NCBI GenBank assembly: GCA_950097015.1
Contig: CATNEN010000038.1
Span: 2,108,001-2,172,000 of the forward strand
From: Macrostomum hystrix
Lineage: Eukaryota > Animalia > Platyhelminthes
DNA length: 64,000 bases
Direction of reading: 5' to 3'
In this document: positions 37,871 through 61,950 of the stretch, one piece after another
How the letters are laid out: each line of letters starts with the position of its first letter
How positions within the stretch are numbered: position 1 is the stretch's first letter
Notes under the pieces: model-generated
What the model saw: the letters and a program-made list of their open reading frames with translations, nothing else
The model's database searches: none
What the model was told of the DNA's origin: nothing
Position numbers and translations under genes: made by a program

Positions 37871-38403
37871 TAATTTCGCTCTCCTAATTTTTCTCTTTTA
37901 ATTTCAGGCGCCCTTGTCATAGCCTTATATCCAGAGCAATACCTGCGTATAGAAATCATTAGGAACTCTTGTCTGAGCACTGGTCTTCGCTAGTCTAATC
38001 CTCATCGATTGACCGTCAAATCAAGTCATTTCTCGCATGCTGTCAATTTTTAGCTTCCGATTTGCTCCACCCTCTCTGCATTGCAGGAAATTTGCTTGAC
38101 TTTCAGAATATGCCGCGTCCGTCGACTAATCACCGAAGCCTTGTCTTTGCCACTCTCACTCACTCACTCGTCAATTCAACCCAAACGACCTGCGCGAATA
38201 GGGCAATGGAAGATTTTGCCGAAAACTGGTAAAAAGGGAGCTCTGGACGGTGAGAGAGCGTGCGGACTCGCCCGTGTGGAGTCGGCGGTGCAGCGGCTGC
38301 TGATTGGCTGCCTCGCCCCCAACCCGCCTCCGCGAACTCTCCTGGCGGCCAGGTTTGCACGGGGCAATTTCTGTATGGCAGGAGGGAGGCGCGAGAGGCA
38401 AAA

Positions 38404-38892
38404 ATGTCTTGCCAGCAGAAGCCGCCGTCACTGGAAGCAATGTTCCACTCGGCCTGCAGCCGTGACGGCATTCAACGGGTCTCCTCCGCGTCGTCACCCG
38501 GCGACGGTGCAGGAGTTCGACGCCTCAACAACTTCCTAAGCAGATTGAAAAGCATATTCTGTAGCTGTTGCTGCTGTTGCTGCTGCCGCTGCTGCCGCTG
38601 TAGCTGCAGCTGTTGGCAGAGCAGTCGGGAAGGCCGATTGAAGTACCACCAGCCCCTGCGCAGTCAGAGCCGCTCGCCGCTGCATCAGGTGACGCCGTCG
38701 TCAACCCTGCTGCTGGACTCAAGCGCGATGGGCTGCCGGCGTCTGGAGATCGATAGCGACGACGACGACCGGGTCTCGCTGAGCGATGGAAGACGTCTTC
38801 AGTCTCAGTTGCGCAAATTGCTCAGCCAGCCTGGTGACGCCAATGACGATAAAGCCCTGGCAGGACGAAGCAGCTGCAACAAACGCCACAAA
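38404..38892 (+). CDS. Probable first coding exon of an unidentified gene, with a cysteine string
   Basis: GC-rich and coding-like. ATG at 38404. CSCCCCCCCRCCRCSCSC tract. Candidate donor AAA|GTGAGA at 38893, followed by a minisatellite as in other introns here. Confidence 0.45.
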
Positions 38893-38967
38893 GTGAGAAC
38901 AGAAAGCCTATTGTCTCACTGCGGGGTCACAGTGTCCGCGGCTCATCACTCTACACCAGAAACCCAC

Positions 38968-40037
38968 TTGAGTGACAGAATCAGACCAGAGAGACATAAT
39001 CCCACCAGAGTGGCAGAATCCAAAAGTGACAGAATCTCAACAGAGTAACAGAATCCCACTAGAGTGACAGAATTCCACTAGAGTGACAGAATCACACTAG
39101 AGTAACAGAATCCCACTAGAGTAACAGAATCCCACTAGAGTAACAGAATCCCACTAGAGTGACAGATTCCCACTAGAGTGACAGAATCCCACTAGAGAAA
39201 CAGAATCCCACTAGAGTAACAGAATCCCACTAGAGTAACAGAATCCCACTAGAGTAACAGAATCCCACTAGAGTAACAGAATCCCACTAGAGTGACAGAA
39301 TTCCACTAGAGTGACAGAATCCCACTAGAGTGACAGAATCCCACTAGAGTGACAGATTCCCACTAGAGTGACAGAATCCCACTAGAGAAACAGAATCCCA
39401 CTAGAGTAACAGAATCCCACTAGAGTAACAGAATCCCACTAGAGTAACAGAATCCCACTAGAGTAACAGAATCCCACTAGAGTAACAGAATCCCACTAGA
39501 GTGACAGAATTCCACTAGAGTGACAGAATCCCACTAGAGTGACAGAATCCCACTAGAGTGACAGAATCCCACTAGAGTGACAGAATTCCACTAGAGTGAC
39601 AGAATTCCACTAGAGTGACAGAATACCACAAGAGTGGCAGAATCCAAAAGTGACAGAATCCAAGAGTGACAGAATCCAAGAGTGACAGAATGCAAGAGTG
39701 ACAGAATCCAAGAGTGACAGAATCCAAGAGTGACAGAATCCAAGAGTGACAGAATCCAAGAGTGACAGAATCCAAGAGTGACAGAATGCAAGAGTGACAG
39801 AATCCAAGAGTGACAGAATGCAAGAGTGACAGAATCCAAGAGTGACAGAATGCAAGAGTGACAGAATCCAAGAGTGACAGAATGCAAGAGTGACAGAATC
39901 CAAGAGTGACAGAATCCAAGAGTGACAGAATCCAAGAGTGACAGAATCCAAGAGTGACAGAATCCAAGAGTGACAGAATCCAAGAGTGACAGAATGCAAG
40001 AGTGACAGAATCCAAGAGTGACAGAATCCAAGAGTGA
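38968..40037 (+). repeat. Compound minisatellite: 19-bp unit switching to a related 16-bp unit
   Basis: AGAGTGACAGAATCCCACT (to about 39620), then AGAGTGACAGAATCCA. Confidence 0.95.
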
Positions 40038-40404
40038 TTGTGGCAATTTCCAAAAAGATCTCGCAATTCAATCAAATCCCGCAGCCCAGTAGCAAAAAAG
40101 TAACAATAACGATATTATATATTTTTTTACTAGCTTTTTTTGCCCGTTGTTTTTGGGGCAGAAATTTAAAGCAAAGCAGTAAGCAATTCACGTCTCTGTA
40201 TTAACTTTATAGTGAAGGTCACCATTTATTTATTTACTGCATTAATGAAAAGTGAAGAGTTTGTTTAAGGGCGTTTTAAGTAAAAAATAAGTGAAAAGTT
40301 TGTCCAAAAAGCCCCCTCTTGATTACTTCTTTAGAAACATGTCTCTTAGCCACTCCTCTATACAGTCAGTGGCAGATCCAGGAATTTTGTTTTGGGGCGG
40401 TCTG

Positions 40405-42325
40405 TCAGGGGTTTGTTTGTCGTTTGTCATTCTTTGTCGCCGATGGGTTTCCAGTGCGAATGTCAATTTGCCTGATGTTGATGTGGTACCCATCCTCTCC
40501 GTCCCAGAAAATAAGCGGATACTGCAATGTATCATAGGCTTTGTGCAGCTCAGAAATCCTTTGCAACTGATTGCTTCGCAGCTGCAGAACAATGTCTCGC
40601 TTCTCAAATTCCTGCCCAACAATTTGAATTGCGACATCGTTAACAACTGGTGCGTTATATCTCCTCTCATGCTGGCCTGCAGGCCGTTTATCAGCACGAA
40701 TGACTACTCTGTGCTCCTCTGTGTCCCGTGGCAACCTCTCCATGGCAGTTTTAAATTGACGAACATAATTATTTTTCTCGTGCAGGACTTCCTGTAACTC
40801 AAATACAATGTTGGCACGCACTCCTGGAGCGATTCTACATCGGCGCTCAACCTGCTCTTGATGATCTCCCATGAAGTAGATCTGCAGGAACTTTGGCTCC
40901 TCTCCAGGCAGTGGTAGCAATGATCCTGTCATGGTACACCTGACCTTGGACTTTGAATGCAGGCATGAACCCTGGCTCACGGACAATACTTTTAGCTCCA
41001 AAAGAAGTCATTTGAAAGCAGCTGTTGTAGCACCGGATATTAGACAGAAAGTGCTCAGATTCTTCTGTCTCACCCAGCAACAGATGCCGAAGGCATGGTG
41101 GCAGGTTCTCGTTCAAAGGTTCAAGTATGACCTTTCCGTTGGAACAGCATATGCCTGGAGTTTCGTTGGCCCATCTTAATGCATGGCAGCGTGCGCATTT
41201 GACCGACATTCTCGCCATCGCAAGTTTAGGATGGACACCATAGACAACAGTGGTATCATAACTCAGAGCCGCATTCAGTGCCCAATGACGTGGGCCAGCT
41301 GGCTGATCAGGTTCGTCAACGTTGGGGTTTGTTGGAGCCGGGGGTGGTCCAACAAATTGGAAGGTCTCATCGCGTTCCCTATGTCGCTCTCGATCATCCT
41401 GCCGACGCACTTCAGCCTGGTTGGCTGTTTCATTGCGACGGGCCTCGGCAGTCCGGTCTCTGTTCTGTTCTTGGCGCTGCTGTGTCTGGACTGCAGTCTC
41501 ATTGCGACGGGCCTCGGCAGTCCGGTCTCTGTTCTGTTCTTGGCGCTGCTGTGTCTGGACTGCAGTCTCATTGCGACGGGCCTCGGCAGTCCGGTCTCTG
41601 TCCAGTTCTTGGCGCTGCTGTGTCTGGACTGCAGTCTCATTGCGACGGGCCTCGGCAGTCCGGTCTCTGTCCAGTTCTTGGCGCTGCTGTGTCTGGACTG
41701 CAGTCTCATTGCGATGGGCCTCGGCAGTCCGGTCTCTGTTCTGTTCTTGGCGCTGCTGTGTCTGGACTGCAGTCTCATTGCGACGGGCCTCGGCAGTCCG
41801 GTCTCTGTCCAGTTCTTGGCGCTGCTGTGTCTGGACTGCAGTCTCATTGCGACGGGCCTCGGCAGTCCGGTCTCTGTCCAGTTCTTGGCGCTGCTGTGTC
41901 TGGACTGCAGTCTCATTGCGATGGGCCTCGGCAGTCCGGTCTCTGTTCTGTTCTTGGCGCTGCTGTGTCTGGACTGCAGTCTCATTGCGACGGGCCTCGG
42001 CAGTCCGGTCTCTGTTCTGTTCTTGGCGCTGCTGTGTCTGGACTGCAGTCTCATTGCGACGGGCCTCGGCAGTCCGGTCTCTGTCCAGTTCTTGGCGCTG
42101 CTGTGTCTGGACTGCAGTCTCATTGCGACGGGCCTCGGCAGTTCGCTCTCTGTTAAGCTCTCGTCGCCTATCTACGTCTCTGCCGTGACTGGCTGTAGAA
42201 CTTATTGCAGCTCCAGCACTGCTTCCACTGGTGCCTGATGTCTGTGCTCTTGTCCGAGGTCGAAGGTTATAAGGCTGGACTGGCTCAGCTTCATTTTCAC
42301 TTGAAGCTGCTTGTGGCTGTGCTGA
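40405..42325 (-). pseudogene. Helitron RepHel N-terminal region (STPR-like repeats, Zn motif, pre-Rep conserved region); frameshift near 40930; truncated before the HUH and helicase domains
   Basis: CARCHA..W..E..GICCSNGKV, FL.NIRCYNSCFQMTSFG, FKVQGQVYH, GSLLP..GEEPKFLQIY and YDTLQYPLIFWDGEDGY. Confidence 0.88.
41430..42160 (-). repeat. 69-bp coding repeat giving 23-aa STPR-like units (about 10-11 copies)
   Basis: ETAVQTQQRQELDRDRTAEARRN repeats in the Helitron frame. Confidence 0.9.
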
Positions 42326-42410
42326 ACGTCCTATTTTCCAGTACCAGTAACAGTACCAGTACCGGAAAAAATAAAAGTTAAAACAAATGGTCGTAACATC
42401 GAAAAATATT

Positions 42411-44349
42411 AATTGCCATGGCTGTAGATGAAGCACGTGCAATTTCAGCTTCCTACAGCATCCAGCGCCGGAGCAGTGGACCCTTAAAGTGCGTCTCCCC
42501 ACCCCAGCCATAGAAGCCTCTGTTACTAAGGTCATGAGGACCCTTATTGCGCCAGCATGACTGGTCAGGGGCAACTAATAACCATCAGAGCATCAATTGC
42601 CATGGCTGTAGATGAAGCACGTGCAATTTCAGCTTCCTACAGCATCCAGCGCCGGAGCAGTGGACCCTTAAAGTGCGTCTCCCCACCCCAGCCATAGAAG
42701 CCTCTGTTACTAAGGTCATGAGGACCCTTATTGCGCCAGCATGACTGGTCAGGGGCAACTAATAACCATCAGAGCATCAATTGCCATGGCTGTAGATGAA
42801 GCACGTGCAATTTCAGCTTCCTACAGCATCCAGCGCCGGAGCAGTGGACCCTTAAAGTGCGTCTCCCCACCCCAGCCATAGAAGCCTCTGTTACTAAGGT
42901 CATGAGGACCCTTATTGCGCCAGCATGACTGGTCAGGGGCAACTAATAACCATCAGAGCATCAATTGCCATGGCTGTAGATGAAGCACGTGCAATTTCAG
43001 CTTCCTACAGCATCCAGCGCCGGAGCAGTGGACCCTTAAAGTGCGTCTCCCCACCCCAGCCATAGAAGCCTCTGTTACTAAGGTCATGAGGACCCTTATT
43101 GCGCCAGCATGACTGGTCAGGGGCAACTAATAACCATCAGAGCATCAATTGCCATGGCTGTAGATGAAGCACGTGCAATTTCAGCTTCCTACAGCATCCA
43201 GCGCCGGAGCAGTGGACCCTTAAAGTGCGTCTCCCCACCCCAGCCATAGAAGCCTCTGTTACTAAGGTCATGAGGACCCTTATTGCGCCAGCATGACTGG
43301 TCAGGGGCAACTAATAACCATCAGAGCATCAATTGCCATGGCTGTAGATGAAGCACGTGCAATTTCAGCTTCCTACAGCATCCAGCGCCGGAGCAGTGGA
43401 CCCTTAAAGTGCGTCTCCCCACCCCAGCCATAGAAGCCTCTGTTACTAAGGTCATGAGGACCCTTATTGCGCCAGCATGACTGGTCAGGGGCAACTAATA
43501 ACCATCAGAGCATCAATTGCCATGGCTGTAGATGAAGCACGTGCAATTTCAGCTTCCTACAGCATCCAGCGCCGGAGCAGTGGACCCTTAAAGTGCGTCT
43601 CCCCACCCCAGCCATAGAAGCCTCTGTTACTAAGGTCATGAGGACCCTTATTGCGCCAGCATGACTGGTCAGGGGCAACTAATAACCATCAGAGCATCAA
43701 TTGCCATGGCTGTAGATGAAGCACGTGCAATTTCAGCTTCCTACAGCATCCAGCGCCGGAGCAGTGGACCCTTAAAGTGCGTCTCCCCACCCCAGCCATA
43801 GAAGCCTCTGTTACTAAGGTCATGAGGACCCTTATTGCGCCAGCATGACTGGTCAGGGGCAACTAATAACCATCAGAGCATCAATTGCCATGGCTGTAGA
43901 TGAAGCACGTGCAATTTCAGCTTCCTACAGCATCCAGCGCCGGAGCAGTGGACCCTTAAAGTGCGTCTCCCCACCCCAGCCATAGAAGCCTCTGTTACTA
44001 AGGTCATGAGGACCCTTATTGCGCCAGCATGACTGGTCAGGGGCAACTAATAACCATCAGAGCATCAATTGCCATGGCTGTAGATGAAGCACGTGCAATT
44101 TCAGCTTCCTACAGCATCCAGCGCCGGAGCAGTGGACCCTTAAAGTGCGTCTCCCCACCCCAGCCATAGAAGCCTCTGTTACTAAGGTCATGAGGACCCT
44201 TATTGCGCCAGCATGACTGGTCAGGGGCAACTAATAACCATCAGAGCATCAATTGCCATGGCTGTAGATGAAGCACGTGCAATTTCAGCTTCCTACAGCA
44301 TCCAGCGCCGGAGCAGTGGACCCTTAAAGTGCGTCTCCCCACCCCAGCC
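42411..44349 (+). repeat. 184-bp satellite array, left arm (about 10.5 copies)
   Basis: AATTGCCATGGCTGTAGATG recurs at 42411, 42595 and onward; copies look identical. Confidence 0.97.
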
Positions 44350-44798
44350 GTATGGCCTTGTGGCAAATTCAGATATGCGCGAATTAGCCAATTTTATAGT
44401 TTCTTTGGCGGCATATCTTAATTGAACAGTGAACATGCATCCTTTTTTAAGCCTCCACGTTGCTTACTCCTCGTCCATTGTTGTGCAGGATTTGCTTTTA
44501 ATTGTTAGGTTTAGTCTCTTTAAACTCCACTGGCGCTGTATTCTTATCCCAGTGTATTACGAGCGTGCCTTCCTAATGCTATTGTTAAGTCTTAAATGGT
44601 TTTAATTTTCTGACAGCTTACTGTACCTGACCTTCGTAATTTACTCCCTTTTAATTGGATGATTGTTGGCCTTCAATTTCACTGGCTATGGTGAGGAGTG
44701 GGGGTTTTCGAGCAGGGCAAATACGCTCGTATAAAGGAACTCAATACTCCGCGCAGTGTCATAAAATATTATCAATAAGGAACCTCACTTGGAACGCC

Positions 44799-47700
44799 AT
44801 GCTTCGAATTTTTGTTGTATCGCTTCTCTTTACCTCCTGCATTGCTTTTAAACGAGGAAAACTTAGCACTGTACATCTATCACCGCTTATTTTTGGTGAA
44901 TATGAAGAATCGGAGCTTTGCTCCTCTTCCTACCACGATCCTAAATCCATATGGGGTCAGATCGTTCTGAAACTTGATTTCAAAAACTCCCTTTTGAATC
45001 GCAAGACTGTCTACGAATACTATCGGCGTCACGCTAGAGGTAAGTTTGGCTTTGCTGATTGCCTTTCATGTACGTGCATGCATATGTACTGCTTGTGAAT
45101 GACGGTCACATCCAGGGGAGTCAAAACACATGTGGCCTAAATGAAAAGAATGACTCAAGATTGTTGCGATCCCATAGAATGTGTCACTAACTCCTTATTG
45201 CTTCAGTACAATCAGCTGTAAAATGAGTACGAGTATGAAGGGTTGCCACCCACAAATCTTTGGACTGAACAACAGTCATTAGATGCGTCGCGTAATCTGC
45301 AGCTGTGCTGTCGGTTGCAAATCTCGCATAGGGGCCAGGTGTAGAACGTTATCGTAATCACTATTATTACTATTAGTCGAACAGGCAATCGACATTAAAA
45401 TTTTCTCTTTAACTGTAATGGGTTGGGATCACTTTCTACTTAAAAGTATACTGTAGAATGGCACCAATGTCAGACAAAGTAAACTGACGTGAACACCACG
45501 AGAAAACTACAAGTTGGCTATCAGCTCATCAGAACATAAATTTATCTGAATACATTGCTGCTTTAATTATCACATGATTTTGGGGCTCTAAGCCTACTTT
45601 ATTATTTTGCACTATAAGGATCCAATTATTTCCAAAATTTTCCTTCCAGAGCAGCAGCGCGCGGCAGGAGCTTCACCTCCAGCAGCAGCTGAGCGCACGG
45701 ATGGAGCGCCAACTCCAGCGGCAGCGGAGCAGCGCGCGGCAGCAGCTCCACCTCCAGCGGCAGCTGGGCGCACGGATGGAGCGCCAACTCCAGCGGCAGC
45801 GGAGCAGCGCGCGGCAGCAGCTCCACCTCCAGCGGCAGCTGGGCGCACGGATGGAGCGCCAACTCCAGCGGCAGCGGAGCAGCCTTTATCAGATGAAGGC
45901 TCTTTTCAGGTGAGCGATCCCACTTCTGACAATCAATCTATCTCGAAGGATTCTGATCACCAATTAAAATTTAACATTTCAATAAGCGGAAAAGAGTGGT
46001 TTGACGGGGCTAGGTTTCATAAAGCAAAAACCTACGTGTTTACAAAGGATTCATCCATGTGGTGGATGTCAACTTTAAGGAAACTATTAGCAAGCATTGA
46101 GGATCATGAAGTATCAGGATGCATTCTAAAATTTAAAAACCGTTACATCAATGATCCTTCTGTTTCAATGCGAGCTAAAAAATACTTCATAAGACAGCTT
46201 GCCCAATGTCAGCATTCAACGTGCAACAAAAAGTTTGAATTTATATTAAAAGCATTGCCAAGAACGGCAAATGTAGATGTTACGCTATCAGTTTCAACAC
46301 AAGGACAGAAAAGGCACGACTTTCCAACTCTAAGTAAAGTTACAGCTGTTGAAGCAGAAAAATTTAAAGAGCTGTTGAAAGAAAAAAGTCCGGCTGAACT
46401 GTATGACGAGCTTTTGGCGTCAATGACAGAAAAAGAGATAGACGAGAATGACTTTTCGCGCGTCAAATCTCTTCCAGCTATTCGGCGAATTAACGCGAAG
46501 CTAGAAGTCAAAGAAGAAGGACGCGTGCACAAAAATGTCATTAAAGAACTTCATATTATGCAAAAAATTATGCGAAATACGGACATTGAAAGTAAATCCA
46601 TAAAAGGCTTCATTCAAAGCTTTGAGTTCGATCCGTTTCTAATAACGTTGTACTCAGAAAAGCAGTTAAACTTACTGGCTGACCGGCCCGGGTGCGTTTT
46701 ACATTTAGATGCGACAGGTGGAGTTCATCGAATCATCGAACATGTAAAAAAGCCATGCCTCATCTACTCGCTGCTTCTACCATCGAAAAGCGGAAACACT
46801 CGCAGCATTCCTATTGCAGAGATGGTTTCTACGATTCAAACAACTCCAAAAATAAGCAATTTTCTGTTTAGTGTCCGCTGTGATCTCGCAAGGCTTATCG
46901 GTCGAAACTCTGTGATGCGAAGGGAATGTTTGCCGGGCATCATTGTCACAGATTTTTCCTGGGCACTGCTGCACTCAGTGTGCCATGCCTTTGGCAGTGA
47001 GTTGGAGAGCTACTTAAATGAAGCTTACAATGCCGTAAAAACCAACACACTGGTTGACCATCCTATACCTTTTGTTTGCACCAATCATGTTATCAAAGCG
47101 TTTATTCGCGGACTAGGTGAAATTCCACAGGCAAAGAATACAGATAAAAGTATGAAGGAAATTCTTGTATCAGCGTTTGTATACCTCATTCATCAGGAGA
47201 CCTTCGCGGGCTTTGAGAGCACCATTAATCTGATTATTGAGGAATTCACGTCTGACCAAAATCTAAAAAAGCTTCGTGAAAGGCTTAAGCAATGGGACAC
47301 ATCTGTGTCGCACGTTTTAGAATCAGAATCTGACCGCACGCCATCTGATGTTGAAGACGAAAGTCTCAGCGAAGATGAAAAAAAAATAACCCAAGAACGC
47401 AAGAAAGCCGATAGAAAAACGATTCGAAACTGCTCGCCATTTATGAAACATTTTTCATATTTGTTAAAATCAGTTAGATCTCCTGCAGAGCATGTAATCG
47501 CGCCTGAATTACTTGAATACCTAATCAAGCACTGGCTTCCACTGGCCCCTCTATTTGCGATGTTTATATGTGAGATAAAAAGTTTTGAAAAGATCGACAG
47601 CTGGTATTCTAATGCTTTTGTGGAGTCGTACTTTCGTGAATTGAAGAAAAATAAAGCCACGAGAAGTTCTCGGCTTAAGATATGTGCATTCACTGAGCAG

Positions 47701-48747
47701 CAATTCCAGTATGTACTACGCCGCGTGAAAGGTTTCTCGATTCTTGCGGACAAACGTGCCCCTAAATTATCCAGTCAAAGAAATGAAGAAAGCGCACAAG
47801 AAGCGAAAGAGCAGTGGGGCAGGAAGCCCACAAGACAGCGAACTAAATATAAGCGACCAAGCTCACCGATTCTAAAGCCCGAGACGACCAAGAAAAAGTC
47901 ACGACATGTAAAACCGCCCCAGAACGAACCAGAATCAAGAGGCAAACCAAAGGAGAGCTTTATTTGGAAGACTACTACGAATGACGTAATCGTAGACTTC
48001 GACAAAGAATCACTACAGCCAAATGCGTGGGTTTCGCTTGGATCAGTCAATGCATTCGTAAATATTCTTTGTGAGAGCAATCCTAGAAGTCACATTCGAC
48101 TCCTAAAGTGCAGCTTTTTCGAACAGCTACTAAGAGACGACAGCGCCGCAGCAGCTCAGAGCCTCTTGGACTGCGCTGACTCAACTGCGACTAAAATTCT
48201 GTGTCCAGTTCTGCTGAACTATCACTACTTTTTAGTTTACGTCAACCTGCAAACCAAGGAATTTTCGCTTCTTGATCCCATGGTGCAAAATGAATCTCGC
48301 CGAACGAATCAGTACCTAGAAGCATGGCAAAAATTTGCAGGCAGTCAAGAAATACAAAATATAATGCCCAGCGCATATGGGCAGTACAAGAAGCGCTCGT
48401 TTCTTCACTCCATGCAAAAGGATTCATACAACTGCGGTGTTTTTGTCTGTCTGTTTGCTAAGATGTTAATTATAGGATCAGCAGCAGGATTTAGCAACTT
48501 AATGATTCCGACCAGCCAGAGGTTTTTTAATGCTGCTCGAAATTACATTTGGAAAACGATTGAAAGCAACTGTCAGAAATTATCGATGGAATCAGACACT
48601 TGCAAAGTATGCAAGGGCAGCACCAGAAGTGAGACATTTTGGATCCAGTGCGATCTCTGTGATGCCTGGATTCACAGTCGATGCGCCGAATCCGAATTAT
48701 TGATTCGTCATCAATCTGGTGCCTTTGTGTCTTGCTGCACTAATTGA
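44799..48747 (+). CDS. NOF/MULE-like DDE transposase fused to a Ulp1 (C48) protease and a PHD finger; exons 44799-45039 and 45650-48747 (about 1112 aa)
   Basis: LHLDATG (D ~46708), IIVTDFSWAL (D ~46951), CTNH (CxxH), SNAFVESYF (E ~47623). PVLLNYHYFLV..LLDPM..QKDSYNCGVFVC. CKVC..WIQCDLCDAWIHSRC. A phase-1 GT-AG intron joins the two exons in frame. Confidence 0.85.
45652..45883 (+). repeat. 75-bp coding repeat, 3 copies (Ala/Pro-rich linker)
   Basis: EQRAAAAPPPAAAGRTDGAPTPAAA units. Confidence 0.85.
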
Positions 48748-49671
48748 TCGAGTCTTCGGCGTTTTGGCTCAGGCCTCAGCACCGCGAGTCACATTCGCTT
48801 TCGTATCAATAGCTTTTCCTAATCAATTTTTAGCTGAAGTGCCACAGATTAAAACCGTTGCATATTGAGTGGTACCATGCTAAACTATACTTAGTAGTAT
48901 ATAGATTCCATTTCTTATGCACAAATGTGTTTTCTTATTTTGCATGCTTGCTCACCAAGAAGGTTGGCTCATCAGTTGTACCTGTATTTTGCCGTTTATT
49001 CGCTGTTTCTCATTCCATTTTTTATGTGTGCATCATATAGCTTCAGTGGTAACAGTTGCTCATTTTGCTTACATCGCTAAAAAACAATTATTTTCGATTT
49101 GGTCTGTATGGGACTCAACTCACCAACAGCTTTGACATTCTCCAGTCATAGCCAACAGATCCCTGACCAAGCATGTGTTGAATGAAAATAGATTATTAGG
49201 CATTAGAGAGGTAGTTTCCAACAAAGAAACTACCATGCTAGTCATAGAAGGTAGCTTTTTATGATAAGCGTAGTCGACTACAATAATGTAAATTCTACTT
49301 AGCAAAAAAAATTTTGGTGAAATATGAAAAATATTATTTTAAAATTTTGTTTTCATTTCAGTTCACAACTAAAAATTAGCAAACTATTTTTAATAATTGT
49401 GTTTAAAACTCAAAGCAGCTATGCTTTGTGATCATAGCATAATACGAATGAAAAACTTTGTGAGTAACTTCGCCAAAGTCGGTCCCAAGCCCGATTTAAA
49501 AAGAAGGAGGGTGCACATATGCCTAATTTACTGCACTAAACGAATCCAATAATTAACTCTGCCAACAAAATACTTCAAAACCCTTCTGCACCAGTAACAA
49601 ACCTTCAGAACCCTGTCACATCTTTGTCCCGGCATTTTCAACGAACCTTTCACACGTTTTAAAGGGTCGTC

Positions 49672-52600
49672 ATGGCTGGGGTGGGGAGACGCACTTTAAG
49701 GGTCCACTGCTCCGGCGCTGGATGCTGTAGGAAGCTGAAATTGCACGTGCTTCATCTACAGCCATGGCAATTGATGCTCTGATGGTTATTAGTTGCCCCT
49801 GACCAGTCATGCTGGCGCAATAAGGGTCCTCATGACCTTAGTAACAGAGGCTTCTATGGCTGGGGTGGGGAGACGCACTTTAAGGGTCCACTGCTCCGGC
49901 GCTGGATGCTGTAGGAAGCTGAAATTGCACGTGCTTCATCTACAGCCATGGCAATTGATGCTCTGATGGTTATTAGTTGCCCCTGACCAGTCATGCTGGC
50001 GCAATAAGGGTCCTCATGACCTTAGTAACAGAGGCTTCTATGGCTGGGGTGGGGAGACGCACTTTAAGGGTCCACTGCTCCGGCGCTGGATGCTGTAGGA
50101 AGCTGAAATTGCACGTGCTTCATCTACAGCCATGGCAATTGATGCTCTGATGGTTATTAGTTGCCCCTGACCAGTCATGCTGGCGCAATAAGGGTCCTCA
50201 TGACCTTAGTAACAGAGGCTTCTATGGCTGGGGTGGGGAGACGCACTTTAAGGGTCCACTGCTCCGGCGCTGGATGCTGTAGGAAGCTGAAATTGCACGT
50301 GCTTCATCTACAGCCATGGCAATTGATGCTCTGATGGTTATTAGTTGCCCCTGACCAGTCATGCTGGCGCAATAAGGGTCCTCATGACCTTAGTAACAGA
50401 GGCTTCTATGGCTGGGGTGGGGAGACGCACTTTAAGGGTCCACTGCTCCGGCGCTGGATGCTGTAGGAAGCTGAAATTGCACGTGCTTCATCTACAGCCA
50501 TGGCAATTGATGCTCTGATGGTTATTAGTTGCCCCTGACCAGTCATGCTGGCGCAATAAGGGTCCTCATGACCTTAGTAACAGAGGCTTCTATGGCTGGG
50601 GTGGGGAGACGCACTTTAAGGGTCCACTGCTCCGGCGCTGGATGCTGTAGGAAGCTGAAATTGCACGTGCTTCATCTACAGCCATGGCAATTGATGCTCT
50701 GATGGTTATTAGTTGCCCCTGACCAGTCATGCTGGCGCAATAAGGGTCCTCATGACCTTAGTAACAGAGGCTTCTATGGCTGGGGTGGGGAGACGCACTT
50801 TAAGGGTCCACTGCTCCGGCGCTGGATGCTGTAGGAAGCTGAAATTGCACGTGCTTCATCTACAGCCATGGCAATTGATGCTCTGATGGTTATTAGTTGC
50901 CCCTGACCAGTCATGCTGGCGCAATAAGGGTCCTCATGACCTTAGTAACAGAGGCTTCTATGGCTGGGGTGGGGAGACGCACTTTAAGGGTCCACTGCTC
51001 CGGCGCTGGATGCTGTAGGAAGCTGAAATTGCACGTGCTTCATCTACAGCCATGGCAATTGATGCTCTGATGGTTATTAGTTGCCCCTGACCAGTCATGC
51101 TGGCGCAATAAGGGTCCTCATGACCTTAGTAACAGAGGCTTCTATGGCTGGGGTGGGGAGACGCACTTTAAGGGTCCACTGCTCCGGCGCTGGATGCTGT
51201 AGGAAGCTGAAATTGCACGTGCTTCATCTACAGCCATGGCAATTGATGCTCTGATGGTTATTAGTTGCCCCTGACCAGTCATGCTGGCGCAATAAGGGTC
51301 CTCATGACCTTAGTAACAGAGGCTTCTATGGCTGGGGTGGGGAGACGCACTTTAAGGGTCCACTGCTCCGGCGCTGGATGCTGTAGGAAGCTGAAATTGC
51401 ACGTGCTTCATCTACAGCCATGGCAATTGATGCTCTGATGGTTATTAGTTGCCCCTGACCAGTCATGCTGGCGCAATAAGGGTCCTCATGACCTTAGTAA
51501 CAGAGGCTTCTATGGCTGGGGTGGGGAGACGCACTTTAAGGGTCCACTGCTCCGGCGCTGGATGCTGTAGGAAGCTGAAATTGCACGTGCTTCATCTACA
51601 GCCATGGCAATTGATGCTCTGATGGTTATTAGTTGCCCCTGACCAGTCATGCTGGCGCAATAAGGGTCCTCATGACCTTAGTAACAGAGGCTTCTATGGC
51701 TGGGGTGGGGAGACGCACTTTAAGGGTCCACTGCTCCGGCGCTGGATGCTGTAGGAAGCTGAAATTGCACGTGCTTCATCTACAGCCATGGCAATTGATG
51801 CTCTGATGGTTATTAGTTGCCCCTGACCAGTCATGCTGGCGCAATAAGGGTCCTCATGACCTTAGTAACAGAGGCTTCTATGGCTGGGGTGGGGAGACGC
51901 ACTTTAAGGGTCCACTGCTCCGGCGCTGGATGCTGTAGGAAGCTGAAATTGCACGTGCTTCATCTACAGCCATGGCAATTGATGCTCTGATGGTTATTAG
52001 TTGCCCCTGACCAGTCATGCTGGCGCAATAAGGGTCCTCATGACCTTAGTAACAGAGGCTTCTATGGCTGGGGTGGGGAGACGCACTTTAAGGGTCCACT
52101 GCTCCGGCGCTGGATGCTGTAGGAAGCTGAAATTGCACGTGCTTCATCTACAGCCATGGCAATTGATGCTCTGATGGTTATTAGTTGCCCCTGACCAGTC
52201 ATGCTGGCGCAATAAGGGTCCTCATGACCTTAGTAACAGAGGCTTCTATGGCTGGGGTGGGGAGACGCACTTTAAGGGTCCACTGCTCCGGCGCTGGATG
52301 CTGTAGGAAGCTGAAATTGCACGTGCTTCATCTACAGCCATGGCAATTGATGCTCTGATGGTTATTAGTTGCCCCTGACCAGTCATGCTGGCGCAATAAG
52401 GGTCCTCATGACCTTAGTAACAGAGGCTTCTATGGCTGGGGTGGGGAGACGCACTTTAAGGGTCCACTGCTCCGGCGCTGGATGCTGTAGGAAGCTGAAA
52501 TTGCACGTGCTTCATCTACAGCCATGGCAATTGATGCTCTGATGGTTATTAGTTGCCCCTGACCAGTCATGCTGGCGCAATAAGGGTCCTCATGACCTTA

Positions 52601-55600
52601 GTAACAGAGGCTTCTATGGCTGGGGTGGGGAGACGCACTTTAAGGGTCCACTGCTCCGGCGCTGGATGCTGTAGGAAGCTGAAATTGCACGTGCTTCATC
52701 TACAGCCATGGCAATTGATGCTCTGATGGTTATTAGTTGCCCCTGACCAGTCATGCTGGCGCAATAAGGGTCCTCATGACCTTAGTAACAGAGGCTTCTA
52801 TGGCTGGGGTGGGGAGACGCACTTTAAGGGTCCACTGCTCCGGCGCTGGATGCTGTAGGAAGCTGAAATTGCACGTGCTTCATCTACAGCCATGGCAATT
52901 GATGCTCTGATGGTTATTAGTTGCCCCTGACCAGTCATGCTGGCGCAATAAGGGTCCTCATGACCTTAGTAACAGAGGCTTCTATGGCTGGGGTGGGGAG
53001 ACGCACTTTAAGGGTCCACTGCTCCGGCGCTGGATGCTGTAGGAAGCTGAAATTGCACGTGCTTCATCTACAGCCATGGCAATTGATGCTCTGATGGTTA
53101 TTAGTTGCCCCTGACCAGTCATGCTGGCGCAATAAGGGTCCTCATGACCTTAGTAACAGAGGCTTCTATGGCTGGGGTGGGGAGACGCACTTTAAGGGTC
53201 CACTGCTCCGGCGCTGGATGCTGTAGGAAGCTGAAATTGCACGTGCTTCATCTACAGCCATGGCAATTGATGCTCTGATGGTTATTAGTTGCCCCTGACC
53301 AGTCATGCTGGCGCAATAAGGGTCCTCATGACCTTAGTAACAGAGGCTTCTATGGCTGGGGTGGGGAGACGCACTTTAAGGGTCCACTGCTCCGGCGCTG
53401 GATGCTGTAGGAAGCTGAAATTGCACGTGCTTCATCTACAGCCATGGCAATTGATGCTCTGATGGTTATTAGTTGCCCCTGACCAGTCATGCTGGCGCAA
53501 TAAGGGTCCTCATGACCTTAGTAACAGAGGCTTCTATGGCTGGGGTGGGGAGACGCACTTTAAGGGTCCACTGCTCCGGCGCTGGATGCTGTAGGAAGCT
53601 GAAATTGCACGTGCTTCATCTACAGCCATGGCAATTGATGCTCTGATGGTTATTAGTTGCCCCTGACCAGTCATGCTGGCGCAATAAGGGTCCTCATGAC
53701 CTTAGTAACAGAGGCTTCTATGGCTGGGGTGGGGAGACGCACTTTAAGGGTCCACTGCTCCGGCGCTGGATGCTGTAGGAAGCTGAAATTGCACGTGCTT
53801 CATCTACAGCCATGGCAATTGATGCTCTGATGGTTATTAGTTGCCCCTGACCAGTCATGCTGGCGCAATAAGGGTCCCTCATGACCTTAGTAACAGAGGC
53901 TTCTATGGCTGGGGTGGGGAGACGCACTTTAAGGGTCCACTTGCTCCGGCGCTGGATGCTGTAGGAAGCTGAAATTGCACGTGCTTCATCTACAGCCATG
54001 GCAATTGATGCTCTGATGGTTATTAGTTGCCCCTGACCAGTCATGCTGGCGCAATAAGGGTCCTCATGACCTTAGTAACAGAGGCTTCTATGGCTGGGGT
54101 GGGGAGACGCACTTTAAGGGTCCACTGCTCCGGCGCTGGATGCTGTAGGAAGCTGAAATTGCACGTGCTTCATCTACAGCCATGGCAATTGATGCTCTGA
54201 TGGTTATTAGTTGCCCCTGACCAGTCATGCTGGCGCAATAAGGGTCCTCATGACCTTAGTAACAGAGGCTTCTATGGCTGGGGTGGGGAGACGCACTTTA
54301 AGGGTCCACTGCTCCGGCGCTGGATGCTGTAGGAAGCTGAAATTGCACGTGCTTCATCTACAGCCATGGCAATTGATGCTCTGATGGTTATTAGTTGCCC
54401 CTGACCAGTCATGCTGGCGCAATAAGGGTCCTCATGACCTTAGTAACAGAGGCTTCTATGGCTGGGGTGGGGAGACGCACTTTAAGGGTCCACTGCTCCG
54501 GCGCTGGATGCTGTAGGAAGCTGAAATTGCACGTGCTTCATCTACAGCCATGGCAATTGATGCTCTGATGGTTATTAGTTGCCCCTGACCAGTCATGCTG
54601 GCGCAATAAAGGGTCCTCATGACCTTAGTAACAGAGGCTTCTATGGCTGGGGTGGGGAGACGCACTTTAAGGGTCCACTGCTCCGGCGCTGGATGCTGTA
54701 GGAAGCTGAAATTGCACGTGCTTCATCTACAGCCATGGCAATTGATGCTCTGATGGTTATTAGTTGCCCCTGACCAGTCATGCTGGCGCAATAAGGGTCC
54801 TCATGACCTTAGTAACAGAGGCTTCTATGGCTGGGGTGGGGAAGACGCACTTTAAGGGTCCACTGCTCCGGCGCTGGATGCTGTAGGAAGCTGAAATTGC
54901 ACGTGCTTCATCTACAGCCATGGCAATTGATGCTCTGATGGTTATTAGTTGCCCCTGACCAGTCATGCTGGCGCAATAAGGGTCCTCATGACCTTAGTAA
55001 CAGAGGCTTCTATGGCTGGGGTGGGGAGACGCACTTTAAGGGTCCACTGCTCCGGCGCTGGATGCTGTAGGAAGCTGAAATTGCACGTGCTTCATCTACA
55101 GCCATGGCAATTGATGCTCTGATGGTTATTAGTTGCCCCTGACCAGTCATGCTGGCGCAATAAGGGTCCTCATGACCTTAGTAACAGAGGCTTCTATGGC
55201 TGGGGTGGGGAGACGCACTTTAAGGGTCCACTGCTCCGGCGCTGGATGCTGTAGGAAGCTGAAATTGCACGTGCTTCATCTACAGCCATGGCAATTGATG
55301 CTCTGATGGTTATTAGTTGCCCCTGACCAGTCATGCTGGCGCAATAAGGGTCCTCATGACCTTAGTAACAGAGGCTTCTATGGCTGGGGTGGGGAGACGC
55401 ACTTTAAGGGTCCACTGCTCCGGCGCTGGATGCTGTAGGAAGCTGAAATTGCACGTGCTTCATCTACAGCCATGGCAATTGATGCTCTGATGGTTATTAG
55501 TTGCCCCTGACCAGTCATGCTGGCGCAATAAGGGTCCTCATGACCTTAGTAACAGAGGCTTCTATGGCTGGGGTGGGGAGACGCACTTTAAGGGTCCACT

Positions 55601-58600
55601 GCTCCGGCGCTGGATGCTGTAGGAAGCTGAAATTGCACGTGCTTCATCTACAGCCATGGCAATTGATGCTCTGATGGTTATTAGTTGCCCCTGACCAGTC
55701 ATGCTGGCGCAATAAGGGTCCTCATGACCTTAGTAACAGAGGCTTCTATGGCTGGGGTGGGGAGACGCACTTTAAGGGTCCACTGCTCCGGCGCTGGATG
55801 CTGTAGGAAGCTGAAATTGCACGTGCTTCATCTACAGCCATGGCAATTGATGCTCTGATGGTTATTAGTTGCCCCTGACCAGTCATGCTGGCGCAATAAG
55901 GGTCCTCATGACCTTAGTAACAGAGGCTTCTATGGCTGGGGTGGGGAGACGCACTTTAAGGGTCCACTGCTCCGGCGCTGGATGCTGTAGGAAGCTGAAA
56001 TTGCACGTGCTTCATCTACAGCCATGGCAATTGATGCTCTGATGGTTATTAGTTGCCCCTGACCAGTCATGCTGGCGCAATAAGGGTCCTCATGACCTTA
56101 GTAACAGAGGCTTCTATGGCTGGGGTGGGGAGACGCACTTTAAGGGTCCACTGCTCCGGCGCTGGATGCTGTAGGAAGCTGAAATTGCACGTGCTTCATC
56201 TACAGCCATGGCAATTGATGCTCTGATGGTTATTAGTTGCCCCTGACCAGTCATGCTGGCGCAATAAGGGTCCTCATGACCTTAGTAACAGAGGCTTCTA
56301 TGGCTGGGGTGGGGAGACGCACTTTAAGGGTCCACTGCTCCGGCGCTGGATGCTGTAGGAAGCTGAAATTGCACGTGCTTCATCTACAGCCATGGCAATT
56401 GATGCTCTGATGGTTATTAGTTGCCCCTGACCAGTCATGCTGGCGCAATAAGGGTCCTCATGACCTTAGTAACAGAGGCTTCTATGGCTGGGGTGGGGAG
56501 ACGCACTTTAAGGGTCCACTGCTCCGGCGCTGGATGCTGTAGGAAGCTGAAATTGCACGTGCTTCATCTACAGCCATGGCAATTGATGCTCTGATGGTTA
56601 TTAGTTGCCCCTGACCAGTCATGCTGGCGCAATAAGGGTCCTCATGACCTTAGTAACAGAGGCTTCTATGGCTGGGGTGGGGAGACGCACTTTAAGGGTC
56701 CACTGCTCCGGCGCTGGATGCTGTAGGAAGCTGAAATTGCACGTGCTTCATCTACAGCCATGGCAATTGATGCTCTGATGGTTATTAGTTGCCCCTGACC
56801 AGTCATGCTGGCGCAATAAGGGTCCTCATGACCTTAGTAACAGAGGCTTCTATGGCTGGGGTGGGGAGACGCACTTTAAGGGTCCACTGCTCCGGCGCTG
56901 GATGCTGTAGGAAGCTGAAATTGCACGTGCTTCATCTACAGCCATGGCAATTGATGCTCTGATGGTTATTAGTTGCCCCTGACCAGTCATGCTGGCGCAA
57001 TAAGGGTCCTCATGACCTTAGTAACAGAGGCTTCTATGGCTGGGGTGGGGAGACGCACTTTAAGGGTCCACTGCTCCGGCGCTGGATGCTGTAGGAAGCT
57101 GAAATTGCACGTGCTTCATCTACAGCCATGGCAATTGATGCTCTGATGGTTATTAGTTGCCCCTGACCAGTCATGCTGGCGCAATAAGGGTCCTCATGAC
57201 CTTAGTAACAGAGGCTTCTATGGCTGGGGTGGGGAGACGCACTTTAAGGGTCCACTGCTCCGGCGCTGGATGCTGTAGGAAGCTGAAATTGCACGTGCTT
57301 CATCTACAGCCATGGCAATTGATGCTCTGATGGTTATTAGTTGCCCCTGACCAGTCATGCTGGCGCAATAAGGGTCCTCATGACCTTAGTAACAGAGGCT
57401 TCTATGGCTGGGGTGGGGAGACGCACTTTAAGGGTCCACTGCTCCGGCGCTGGATGCTGTAGGAAGCTGAAATTGCACGTGCTTCATCTACAGCCATGGC
57501 AATTGATGCTCTGATGGTTATTAGTTGCCCCTGACCAGTCATGCTGGCGCAATAAGGGTCCTCATGACCTTAGTAACAGAGGCTTCTATGGCTGGGGTGG
57601 GGAGACGCACTTTAAGGGTCCACTGCTCCGGCGCTGGATGCTGTAGGAAGCTGAAATTGCACGTGCTTCATCTACAGCCATGGCAATTGATGCTCTGATG
57701 GTTATTAGTTGCCCCTGACCAGTCATGCTGGCGCAATAAGGGTCCTCATGACCTTAGTAACAGAGGCTTCTATGGCTGGGGTGGGGAGACGCACTTTAAG
57801 GGTCCACTGCTCCGGCGCTGGATGCTGTAGGAAGCTGAAATTGCACGTGCTTCATCTACAGCCATGGCAATTGATGCTCTGATGGTTATTAGTTGCCCCT
57901 GACCAGTCATGCTGGCGCAATAAGGGTCCTCATGACCTTAGTAACAGAGGCTTCTATGGCTGGGGTGGGGAGACGCACTTTAAGGGTCCACTGCTCCGGC
58001 GCTGGATGCTGTAGGAAGCTGAAATTGCACGTGCTTCATCTACAGCCATGGCAATTGATGCTCTGATGGTTATTAGTTGCCCCTGACCAGTCATGCTGGC
58101 GCAATAAGGGTCCTCATGACCTTAGTAACAGAGGCTTCTATGGCTGGGGTGGGGAGACGCACTTTAAGGGTCCACTGCTCCGGCGCTGGATGCTGTAGGA
58201 AGCTGAAATTGCACGTGCTTCATCTACAGCCATGGCAATTGATGCTCTGATGGTTATTAGTTGCCCCTGACCAGTCATGCTGGCGCAATAAGGGTCCTCA
58301 TGACCTTAGTAACAGAGGCTTCTATGGCTGGGGTGGGGAGACGCACTTTAAGGGTCCACTGCTCCGGCGCTGGATGCTGTAGGAAGCTGAAATTGCACGT
58401 GCTTCATCTACAGCCATGGCAATTGATGCTCTGATGGTTATTAGTTGCCCCTGACCAGTCATGCTGGCGCAATAAGGGTCCTCATGACCTTAGTAACAGA
58501 GGCTTCTATGGCTGGGGTGGGGAGACGCACTTTAAGGGTCCACTGCTCCGGCGCTGGATGCTGTAGGAAGCTGAAATTGCACGTGCTTCATCTACAGCCA

Positions 58601-61600
58601 TGGCAATTGATGCTCTGATGGTTATTAGTTGCCCCTGACCAGTCATGCTGGCGCAATAAGGGTCCTCATGACCTTAGTAACAGAGGCTTCTATGGCTGGG
58701 GTGGGGAGACGCACTTTAAGGGTCCACTGCTCCGGCGCTGGATGCTGTAGGAAGCTGAAATTGCACGTGCTTCATCTACAGCCATGGCAATTGATGCTCT
58801 GATGGTTATTAGTTGCCCCTGACCAGTCATGCTGGCGCAATAAGGGTCCTCATGACCTTAGTAACAGAGGCTTCTATGGCTGGGGTGGGGAGACGCACTT
58901 TAAGGGTCCACTGCTCCGGCGCTGGATGCTGTAGGAAGCTGAAATTGCACGTGCTTCATCTACAGCCATGGCAATTGATGCTCTGATGGTTATTAGTTGC
59001 CCCTGACCAGTCATGCTGGCGCAATAAGGGTCCTCATGACCTTAGTAACAGAGGCTTCTATGGCTGGGGTGGGGAGACGCACTTTAAGGGTCCACTGCTC
59101 CGGCGCTGGATGCTGTAGGAAGCTGAAATTGCACGTGCTTCATCTACAGCCATGGCAATTGATGCTCTGATGGTTATTAGTTGCCCCCTGACCAGTCATG
59201 CTGGCGCAATAAGGGTCCTCATGACCTTAGTAACAGAGGCTTCTATGGCTGGGGTGGGGAGACGCACTTTAAGGGTCCACTGCTCCGGCGCTGGATGCTG
59301 TAGGAAGCTGAAATTGCACGTGCTTCATCTACAGCCATGGCAATTGATGCTCTGATGGTTATTAGTTGCCCCTGACCAGTCATGCTGGCGCAATAAGGGT
59401 CCTCATGACCTTAGTAACAGAGGCTTCTATGGCTGGGGTGGGGAGACGCACTTTAAGGGTTCCACTGCTCCGGCGCTGGATGCTGTAGGAAGCTGAAATT
59501 GCACGTGCTTCATCTACAGCCATGGCAATTGATGCTCTGATGGTTATTAGTTGCCCCTGACCAGTCATGCTGGCGCAATAAGGGTCCTCATGACCTTAGT
59601 AACAGAGGCTTCTATGGCTGGGGTGGGGAGACGCACTTTAAGGGTCCACTGCTCCGGCGCTGGATGCTGTAGGAAGCTGAAATTGCACGTGCTTCATCTA
59701 CAGCCATGGCAATTGATGCTCTGATGGTTATTAGTTGCCCCTGACCAGTCATGCTGGCGCAATAAGGGTCCTCATGACCTTAGTAACAGAGGCTTCTATG
59801 GCTGGGGTGGGGAGACGCACTTTAAGGGTCCACTGCTCCGGCGCTGGATGCTGTAGGAAGCTGAAATTGCACGTGCTTCATCTACAGCCATGGCAATTGA
59901 TGCTCTGATGGTTATTAGTTGCCCCTGACCAGTCATGCTGGCGCAATAAGGGTCCTCATGACCTTAGTAACAGAGGCTTCTATGGCTGGGGTGGGGAGAC
60001 GCACTTTAAGGGTCCACTGCTCCGGCGCTGGATGCTGTAGGAAGCTGAAATTGCACGTGCTTCATCTACAGCCATGGCAATTGATGCTCTGATGGTTATT
60101 AGTTGCCCCTGACCAGTCATGCTGGCGCAATAAGGGTCCTCATGACCTTAGTAACAGAGGCTTCTATGGCTGGGGTGGGGAGACGCACTTTAAGGGTCCA
60201 CTGCTCCGGCGCTGGATGCTGTAGGAAGCTGAAATTGCACGTGCTTCATCTACAGCCATGGCAATTGATGCTCTGATGGTTATTAGTTGCCCCTGACCAG
60301 TCATGCTGGCGCAATAAGGGTCCTCATGACCTTAGTAACAGAGGCTTCTATGGCTGGGGGTGGGGAGACGCACTTTAAGGGTCCACTGCTCCGGCGCTGG
60401 ATGCTGTAGGAAGCTGAAATTGCACGTGCTTCATCTACAGCCATGGCAATTGATGCTCTGATGGTTATTAGTTGCCCCTGACCAGTCATGCTGGCGCAAT
60501 AAGGGTCCTCATGACCTTAGTAACAGAGGCTTCTATGGCTGGGGTGGGGAGACGCACTTTAAGGGTCCACTGCTCCGGCGCTGGATGCTGTAGGAAGCTG
60601 AAATTGCACGTGCTTCATCTACAGCCATGGCAATTGATGCTCTGATGGTTATTAGTTGCCCCTGACCAGTCATGCTGGCGCAATAAGGGTCCTCATGACC
60701 TTAGTAACAGAGGCTTCTATGGCTGGGGTGGGGAGACGCACTTTAAGGGTCCACTGCTCCGGCGCTGGATGCTGTAGGAAGCTGAAATTGCAACGTGCTT
60801 CATCTACAGCCATGGCAATTGATGCTCTGATGGTTATTAGTTGCCCCTGACCAGTCATGCTGGCGCAATAAGGGTCCTCATGACCTTAGTAACAGAGGCT
60901 TCTATGGCTGGGGTGGGGAGACGCACTTTAAGGGTCCACTGCTCCGGCGCTGGATGCTGTAGGAAGCTGAAATTGCACGTGCTTCATCTACAGCCATGGC
61001 AATTGATGCTCTGATGGTTATTAGTTGCCCCTGACCAGTCATGCTGGCGCAATAAGGGTCCTCATGACCTTAGTAACAGAGGCTTCTATGGCTGGGGTGG
61101 GGAGACGCACTTTAAGGGTCCACTGCTCCGGCGCTGGATGCTGTAGGAAGCTGAAATTGCACGTGCTTCATCTACAGCCATGGCAATTGATGCTCTGATG
61201 GTTATTAGTTGCCCCTGACCAGTCATGCTGGCGCAATAAGGGTCCTCATGACCTTAGTAACAGAGGCTTCTATGGCTGGGGTGGGGAGACGCACTTTAAG
61301 GGTCCACTGCTCCGGCGCTGGATGCTGTAGGAAGCTGAAATTGCACGTGCTTCATCTACAGCCATGGCAATTGATGCTCTGATGGTTATTAGTTGCCCCT
61401 GACCAGTCATGCTGGCGCAATAAGGGTCCTCATGACCTTAGTAACAGAGGCTTCTATGGCTGGGGTGGGGAGACGCACTTTAAGGGTCCACTGCTCCGGC
61501 GCTGGATGCTGTAGGAAGCTGAAATTGCACGTGCTTCATCTACAGCCATGGCAATTGATGCTCTGATGGTTATTAGTTGCCCCTGACCAGTCATGCTGGC

Positions 61601-61740
61601 GCAATAAGGGTCCTCATGACCTTAGTAACAGAGGCTTCTATGGCTGGGGTGGGGAGACGCACTTTAAGGGTCCACTGCTCCGGCGCTGGATGCTGTAGGA
61701 AGCTGAAATTGCACGTGCTTCATCTACAGCCATGGCAATT
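49672..61740 (-). repeat. 184-bp satellite array, right arm, inverted relative to the left arm (about 65.5 copies)
   Basis: Reverse complement of the left-arm monomer; the only variants noticed are rare 1-bp insertions. Confidence 0.97.
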
Positions 61741-61825
61741 AATATTTTTCGATGTTACGACCATTTGTTTTAACTTTTATTTTTTCCGGTACTGGTACTG
61801 TTACTGGTACTGGAAAATAGGACGT

Positions 61826-61950
61826 TGTGCTGAAGTGCTTGGTCTTGGTGCTGCTGTTGTTGCGCCGTCTTCTACTGCATTGTTTGGCCTTGCTGTTGCT
61901 CGTCGAGCTGCTTTAGTCAAGCGACTTAAAAAACTTTTCTTAGGTGGCAT
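61826..61950 (-). pseudogene. Detached N-terminus of the Helitron ORF
   Basis: MPPKKSFLSRLTKAARR...PRPSTSAQ joins in frame to PQAASSENEAE at 42317 once the insert and one TSD copy are removed. Confidence 0.85.

Follow-up and report, generated by a model that had tools for sequence, protein, structure and literature searches.

A Rehavkus-like foldback transposon of the flatworm Macrostomum hystrix with a probable chromatin module, a Ulp1-type protease and a PHD finger, on its transposase

Introduction

Most foldback elements have been assigned to the Mutator superfamily, with target duplications of 8-10 bp. Among them, the Rehavkus group (Repbase; insects and an annelid) is related to MuDR. 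Its long inverted ends contain variable tandem repeats in subterminal position, which can expand into satellites of 80 kb, its transposase has a PHD finger, and its target duplications are 9 bp long. A stretch of 64,000 nucleotides from Macrostomum hystrix (assembly GCA_950097015.1, contig CATNEN010000038.1, positions 2,108,001 to 2,172,000 of the forward strand; this whole stretch is called the window, and its first letter is position 1) contains an element whose transposase gene ends with a Ulp1/SENP-type protease and a PHD finger. Like Rehavkus elements, which are 5-18 kb in size, it has tandem repeats in the subterminal parts of long inverted ends and a single large gene for a transposase with a PHD finger, and the motifs of the transposases agree block by block (DATGS, VTDFS, C.AH, SPF, PLW, SNA.VENWF..VK). 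It differs from them in its flatworm host and in a target duplication of 8 bp instead of 9 bp, and whereas it encodes a Ulp1-type protease, the published Rehavkus table gives a PHD finger and no such protease.

Inverted arms of variable-number tandem repeats are also known from FB/FB-NOF of Drosophila, from Tetris and from the nematode element Tm1, but Tetris and most Tm1 copies are without a transposase, and the transposase of Tm1 is Phantom-like, with no PHD finger or Ulp1 domain mentioned for Tm1. With respect to the protein, the same order of transposase, C-terminal Ulp1 protease and then PHD finger has been described by Bao, Kapitonov and Jurka in 2010, who found Ulp1 and Ulp1-plus-PHD tails on MuDR-type transposases of Hydra and the lancelet and on Ginger1-9_HM, and who proposed a role of the SUMO/ubiquitin pathway in transposition (PMC2836005). 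The core of Ginger1 is of the Gypsy-integrase type, whereas the core described here is of the MULE type. Plant Mu-like elements (KI-MULE, VANDAL) have a conserved Ulp1 domain as well, but there it is encoded by a separate accessory gene (VANC/KIU), the elements have no terminal inverted repeats, and silencing acts via DNA methylation; their anti-silencing system recognizes related elements by short motifs in non-coding DNA (PMC13317346). Why unrelated transposases (Mutator-type, Ginger, Zisupton) carry SUMO/ubiquitin-type proteases, often together with a PHD finger, is a question that has been standing since at least 2010. In the case of Zisupton (KDZ), Bohne et al. are said to have described in 2012 a Ulp1 protease on the transposase; the 8-bp target duplication is shared by Zisupton and the flatworm element, but the KDZ transposase domain is absent from the latter and abundant elsewhere in the genome.

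With a probability of about 0.75, the gene in the window is the transposase gene of an autonomous and very recently active foldback DNA transposon that belongs to the Rehavkus branch of the Mutator (MULE) superfamily, and in which the C-terminal pair of domains serves as an accessory chromatin module. The architecture is already known, and new are the flatworm family, the 8-bp duplications and the very large arms. The locus brings no new principle, but it is a clean experimental entry into the old question, as there are complete, near-identical and evidently recent copies in which the catalytic residues are intact, a sister family to compare them with, and a laboratory flatworm that can be made transgenic. 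An initial annotation of the window had reported the fusion of transposase, protease and PHD finger and had suggested that it serves to counteract silencing; its observation is confirmed, and its interpretation is partly supported.

The foldback element and its copies

The element (all feature coordinates are given in Table 1) has precise ends. Its left end (42325-44352) and the inverted right end (61826-59797) are 99.85% identical, and the flanking 8-bp duplication is perfect. When the element and one duplicate are removed in silico, a minus-strand reading frame of 595 aa is restored, which means that this is a true insertion. Six pairs among the 22 genome matches of the 85-bp terminus make elements of 0.7 to 19.5 kb. 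A perfect 8-bp target duplication is present at three of these six paired elements and an imperfect 7-mer at the copy on contig C14, and a search for target duplications at the C10 and C7a copies found none.

The inverted arms consist of a 184-bp tandem repeat. In a genome search this repeat was found only beside the termini of this element, and since, in addition, diverged copies of the element hold about one unit or less, the long arms are read here as a recent expansion of a subterminal segment and not as a captured satellite. The element is in this respect a clear case of a transposon-borne repeat that has grown, on one of the arms, to a satellite array of 12 kb. The two arms of the window element differ six-fold in their number of units, which are 99-100% identical to each other, and other copies of the element have from less than one to 5 units.

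In the 220-Mb assembly the gene occurs in three copies on three contigs. The copy in the window and the copy on contig C10 are identical over 2841 nt, and the copy on contig C29 differs at 3 positions. The C10 element is compact, with a length of 7.1 kb and arms of 3.5 and 4.5 repeat units; the one on C29 is a truncated copy with an interruption. Apart from these, there are two short hairpins, C14:1891826-1893283 (1458 bp) and C1:27001139-27001840 (702 bp), which consist of nothing but the two termini and inverted 184-bp units and which share 99-100% identity with the autonomous copy. Probably this copy mobilizes them as non-autonomous foldback elements.

The transposase core

The core that had been described in the initial annotation as MULE-like, with a D-D-CxxH-E signature, is conserved in 65 homologues and has an RNase H fold. 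In the numbering of a 631-aa segment, T211, D290, C332 and H335 are invariant in these 65 relatives, and D209, N510, E514 and K521 are nearly so; in the numbering of the ORF, D209, D290, C332, H335, N510, E514 and K521 become D368, D449, C491, H494, N669, E673 and K680. The AlphaFold model (mean predicted local distance difference test, pLDDT, 80.9) is made up of an N-terminal sheet, a region of helices, and an RNase H-like core into which a large helical segment is inserted, and its structural Z scores are 11.8 with the P-element transposase, 11.7 with ISCth4 of the IS256 family, 9.6 with Hermes, and about 9 with retroviral integrase cores. As structure alone cannot pick the superfamily, profile, language-model and published-alignment tests were carried out. 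Profile-profile comparison by hhalign with six PF10551-positive MULEs of the same genome gave a probability of 95.4% (E 1.8e-8, 123 columns) with the two aspartates D1 and D2 and the CxxH motif in register, and the control, a mariner transposase from the window, gave 0.08%. The nearest neighbours displayed by the ESM protein language model are mostly MULE clusters, which can be taken as a lead only. In the core alignment printed in the supplement of Dupeyron et al. 2019, with which the protein was compared by eye and unscored, Rehavkus-1_TC, Rehavkus-3_TC and Rehavkus-1_HR share all of the blocks LHLDATGSV, PV.EM.S..H, VVTDFSFA..H/N, C.AH..K, SPF, PLWS, and SNA.VENWF..VK. Also the DNA agrees with such an assignment: target duplications of 8 bp and inverted ends of at least 2 kb lie within what is used to recognize MULEs (8-11 bp, long terminal inverted repeats). 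Because the duplication has 8 and not 9 bp, the element is filed as Rehavkus-like within MULE rather than as a plain Rehavkus member.

Several more general searches were negative. Pfam has no match within the first 800 residues of the ORF. The Pfam MULE model PF10551 matches neither this protein at E <= 1 nor any of 48 family members at E <= 0.01, as the clade is too divergent for that model. The initial annotation had asked for HMM and structure searches, and the MULE assignment is backed by the fold and by the profile-profile match and not by PF10551. A profile of the 65 homologues gave chance-level matches only when compared with PDB sequences, and a word-indexed protein search, a method blind to such distant kin, gave one match for the core and none for the C-terminal part.

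In front of the core there is a small domain with three near-invariant putative zinc ligands (C42, C47 and H78 of the 631-aa segment), and in the AlphaFold model a four-strand sheet at residues 15-73 of the modelled segment carries this Cx4C...H motif. We infer a WRKY/GCM1-like assignment for this N-terminal zinc finger.

Linker, protease and PHD finger

The transposase core is followed by a linker that is as basic as the initial annotation had it, resembling a nuclear localization signal (NLS), and then by the protease domain. In Pfam, residues 864-964 match Peptidase_C48 with 28.1 bits at a cut-off of 20.7, and a model of residues 800-1046 (pLDDT 80.7) matches SENP5, SENP3, SENP2, SENP1 and Ulp1 in Foldseek (E about 1e-8, probability 1.0, template modelling scores, normalized to the target, up to 0.75). 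By sequence, the domain matches SENP2 (E 2.7e-4) and SENP1, within a range of E 3e-4 to 1e-3. The profile and structure comparisons therefore agree with the predicted C48 peptidase, and its proposed His-Asp-Gln-Cys set is present in full, namely as H873 (in HYFL), D890 (in LLDP), the oxyanion residue Q937, and C943 (in QKDSYNCG), together with W808 of the substrate tunnel. In an alignment of 15 sequences the catalytic Cys, the retention of which in family copies had been named as decisive for the idea, is invariant and the Gln is near-invariant. The catalytic Asp is replaced by Asn in two distant relatives. Judged by its residues, the C48 domain is predicted to be catalytically complete. The protein itself has three psi-K-x-E SUMO-consensus sites, which by rough estimate is about the number expected by chance.

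The Pfam match of the terminal PHD finger, at residues 999-1031, reaches 22.4 bits and so stays just below the cut-off of 24. Among solved structures its best relatives by sequence are Alfin-like PHD fingers (E 9e-5), followed by KMT2C, BPTF and MLL. The first six zinc ligands are canonical. The last pair, already recognized as atypical in the initial annotation, consists of two adjacent cysteines, where distant relatives have CxxC; in the sister family, which is described below, the finger ends with Cys-Cys-Cys. Both Trp residues of the PHD motif FWIxCDxCxxWxH are retained. PHD fingers of the Alfin-like, BPTF and MLL types largely read trimethylated lysine 4 of histone H3 (H3K4me3), and because the finger resembles such readers, a role at open or active chromatin, for example in tethering or in the choice of a target, would suit it no less than a role at heterochromatin.

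Relatives and selection

A sister family in the same genome has about 40% protein identity, at least 7 intact open reading frames (ORFs), and the same domain order. Its arms have a 170-bp satellite of their own, with 46 and more than 78 units at the copy on contig C24. Between sister-family sublineages, the ratio of nonsynonymous to synonymous substitution rates (dN/dS), which the initial annotation had wanted to see calculated, is 0.16-0.18 for the whole ORF and thus indicates purifying selection. For the transposase part it is 0.11-0.14, and for the C48 part 0.23-0.35, in the latter case with small underlying counts.

With HMMER, an exhaustive search gave 798 relatives at E <= 0.001. The best three of them (P0001-P0003; 26-29% identity) have the same layout of transposase, C48 protease and PHD finger, with the catalytic residues kept. 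Proteins of a loach, a mussel and a sea cucumber were among the matches that were looked up by name, and all of these are unannotated. Accessory domains detected by Pfam at E <= 0.01 in 48 relatives were PHD in 13, C48 in 9, YqaJ in 3, OTU in 2, and UCH/DUSP in 1. The entire set of domains recurs in different families and species, and purifying selection acts on it. Another arrangement of accessory domains around this type of protease is seen in three proteins of about 1500 aa from other organisms (P0095, P0103, P0131), which matched the query mainly via the C48 domain: they have a PHD finger and a YqaJ-type exonuclease together with a C48 protease.

Gene structure

The initial annotation had treated 44799-48747 as one uninterrupted frame. 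This holds for the larger part, as the ORF at 45607-48747 on the plus strand (1046 aa, from the start of which residues are numbered unless the 631-aa segment is named) is open throughout, but it does not hold for the whole, as there is a stop codon at 45096-45098, after the first exon, and an intron is predicted to separate the two parts. The reading frame resumes past the acceptor ...TTCCTTCCAG/AG at 45649/45650. The predicted splice junction 45039/45650, already named in the initial annotation, is plausible because the phase fits and the GT-AG signals are in place. Exon 1 has a homologue in the N-terminus of the sister family, where it is in frame with the ORF; both families have the block ...GQI..KL..KN...NR..V..YY.R... 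and a hydrophobic start in common, and the distant relative P0002 carries the same block. In evolutionary terms, the predicted exon-1 peptide is genuine coding sequence. All homology searches were done with exon 1 and exon 2 separately.

In both families, the predicted N-terminus (44799-44855) is strongly hydrophobic and resembles a signal peptide, which would not be expected of an enzyme that works in the nucleus. Possibly this stretch is a translated pyrimidine tract that belongs to another intron further upstream, and the true start could then lie elsewhere. The Ala/Pro-rich coding repeat that opens exon 2 varies between the elements, with about 5 and about 10 copies of the 75-bp unit in the C10 and C29 elements, as implied by the ORF lengths. 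The sister family has at the same N-terminal place an unrelated 33-bp coding minisatellite of about 32 copies.

Table 1. Positions of the element, its gene and the encoded domains in the window
Feature	Position	Strand	Basis
Whole foldback-type transposon, 19,500 bp	42326..61825	+	inverted arms; termini ACGTCC...GGACGT
Left target-site duplication, 8 bp, TGTGCTGA	42318..42325	.	perfect match to right copy
Right target-site duplication, 8 bp, TGTGCTGA	61826..61833	.	perfect match to left copy
Left terminus, unique sequence of 85 bp with four CAGTA(A/C)C hexamers in tandem	42326..42410	+	sequence; 22 genome matches
Right unique terminus, inverted copy of left	61741..61825	-	genome search for terminus
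Left arm, 184-bp tandem repeat, 10.5 copies	42411..44352	+	tandem-repeat detection
Right arm, same 184-bp repeat inverted, 65.5 copies, 12 kb	49672..61740	-	tandem-repeat detection
Candidate promoter TATAAA, about 65 nt 5' of first ATG	44730..44735	+	inferred from sequence
Predicted exon 1 (80 codons + 1 nt)	44799..45039	+	ATG 44799; donor AGAG/GTAAGT at 45040
Predicted GT-AG intron, 610 nt	45040..45649	+	donor, polypyrimidine tract, AG acceptor, phase
Exon 2 through stop codon (transposase, linker, C48 protease, PHD finger)	45650..48747	+	open frame and Pfam
In-frame Ala/Pro-rich coding tandem repeat, 75-bp unit, 3.1 copies	45653..45883	+	tandem-repeat detection
N-terminal zinc-finger-like beta domain, Cx4C...H (C201, C206, H237), probably DNA-binding	46207..46317	+	conservation and model
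DDE catalytic core D368, D449, C491-x2-H494, N669-x3-E673, K680	46708..47646	+	alignment, model, profile
Basic disordered NLS-like linker, residues 716-784, 21 Lys/Arg in 69	47752..47958	+	composition and model disorder
Ulp1/SENP-type C48 cysteine protease domain	48004..48561	+	Pfam, model, residues
PHD-type finger C999, C1002, C1015, C1018, H1023, C1026, adjacent C1043-C1044	48601..48738	+	Pfam, alignment, PDB match

Possible function and alternative explanations

If the gene encodes a Rehavkus-like transposase with an accessory chromatin module, its parts may cooperate as follows. The N-terminal zinc finger would bind the termini of the element, and the DDE core would perform a cut-and-paste reaction with 8-bp staggered target cuts. 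The PHD finger, being of the Alfin/BPTF-like type that reads methylated H3K4, could dock the transposase on nucleosomes, probably on H3K4-methylated ones, and, once docked at the donor or target site, the protease may remove SUMO, or a modifier related to it, from proteins bound to chromatin, which would help access or repair. There are points that weigh against this explanation: the match to Rehavkus rests on the reading of a printed alignment by eye and not on a scored search or a tree, no Pfam transposase family matches the protein or 47 homologues, the target duplication has 8 bp instead of the 9 bp that are tabulated for Rehavkus, and the PHD finger ends with an atypical pair of zinc ligands, in a part of the model that has low confidence (pLDDT 41-67).

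The same tail can be thought of as an anti-silencing module, with a transposase that sits on the satellite arms of its own element, reads the chromatin there, and removes SUMO from the machinery of PIWI-interacting RNAs (piRNAs) and heterochromatin, by which the element would stay transcribed and mobile. The catalytic set of the protease is indeed intact and conserved, the near-identical copies have evidently escaped silencing recently, and in plants the Ulp1-bearing VANC/KIU genes of Mu-like elements belong to a sequence-specific anti-silencing system, although the role of Ulp1 is not established even there (PMC13317346). However, the 184-bp unit and the 85-bp terminus share just a single 8-mer, the PHD finger is like H3K4me3 readers and not like readers of repressive marks, and older copies hold at most about one repeat unit, so that long arms are not needed to keep the module. 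Such an arm-bound anti-silencing function is therefore regarded as unlikely. If one supposes more specifically a transposon-encoded counter-defence, in which the Ulp1-PHD tail is recruited to the element's own chromatin and deSUMOylates a heterochromatin machinery guided by small RNAs, animals would have an equivalent of the VANC anti-silencing factors of plants, here carried on the transposase itself; this explanation is rather improbable. It is very unlikely, on the other hand, that the C48 domain is a processing protease in the style of the CE-clan enzymes of adenoviruses and poxviruses, which would cut the fusion into a transposase and a free piece with PHD finger or protease: poxvirus core proteases are matched by the fold too, but more weakly (E 1e-4) than SENP and Ulp1, which are the best matches, and self-processing is disfavoured because the only Gly-Gly of the protein, at residue 371, lies in the first catalytic motif of the core and not in the linker.

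Two further explanations concern the nature of the element rather than the function of its tail. An affiliation with the Zisupton (KDZ) superfamily would fit the Ulp1 domain and the length of the target duplication, which is the same as that of Zisupton (PMC12730594), but PF18758 finds 111 places in the genome and none at the loci of this family, neither the protein nor 47 homologues have a KDZ match, and the profile and motif matches point to MULE and Rehavkus. A Zisupton identity is extremely improbable and was rejected, as PF18758 has no match at any locus of this family. The gene could also be imagined as an immobile, domesticated gene of the host that has satellite blocks on either side by coincidence, for which a long intact ORF under purifying selection would speak. 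This is extremely improbable in view of the precise termini with target duplications at three loci, the interrupted reading frame that is restored on removal of the element, the near-identical copies on three contigs, and the short non-coding derivatives that have the same ends.

Other observations in the window and the genome

KDZ/Zisupton-type domains are abundant in the genome. Many of the 111 matches lie in intact frames of about 827 aa, and they are clustered on contig C1; this is a separate population of transposons that is apparently young.

The minus-strand ORF that is interrupted by the element (40847-42325 plus 61834-61950) begins at 61950, and within it there is a tandem repeat of 69-bp units at 41430-42161; no Pfam match was found in the portion scanned. 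Just left of the element, at 33242-40133, there are unrelated tandem arrays with short units (23, 21, 14, 14, 19 and 16 bp) and a strong G/C strand asymmetry. On its plus strand the window also contains, at 18894-21184, exons for the SH3, SH2 and kinase domains of a Src-family tyrosine kinase, which is 98% identical to a Macrostomum lignano protein, the closest match of a host gene, and which agrees with a Macrostomum host, and, at 12699-13766, an intact-looking mariner/Tc1-type transposase ORF of 355 aa (HTH_48, Transposase_1, DDE_3).

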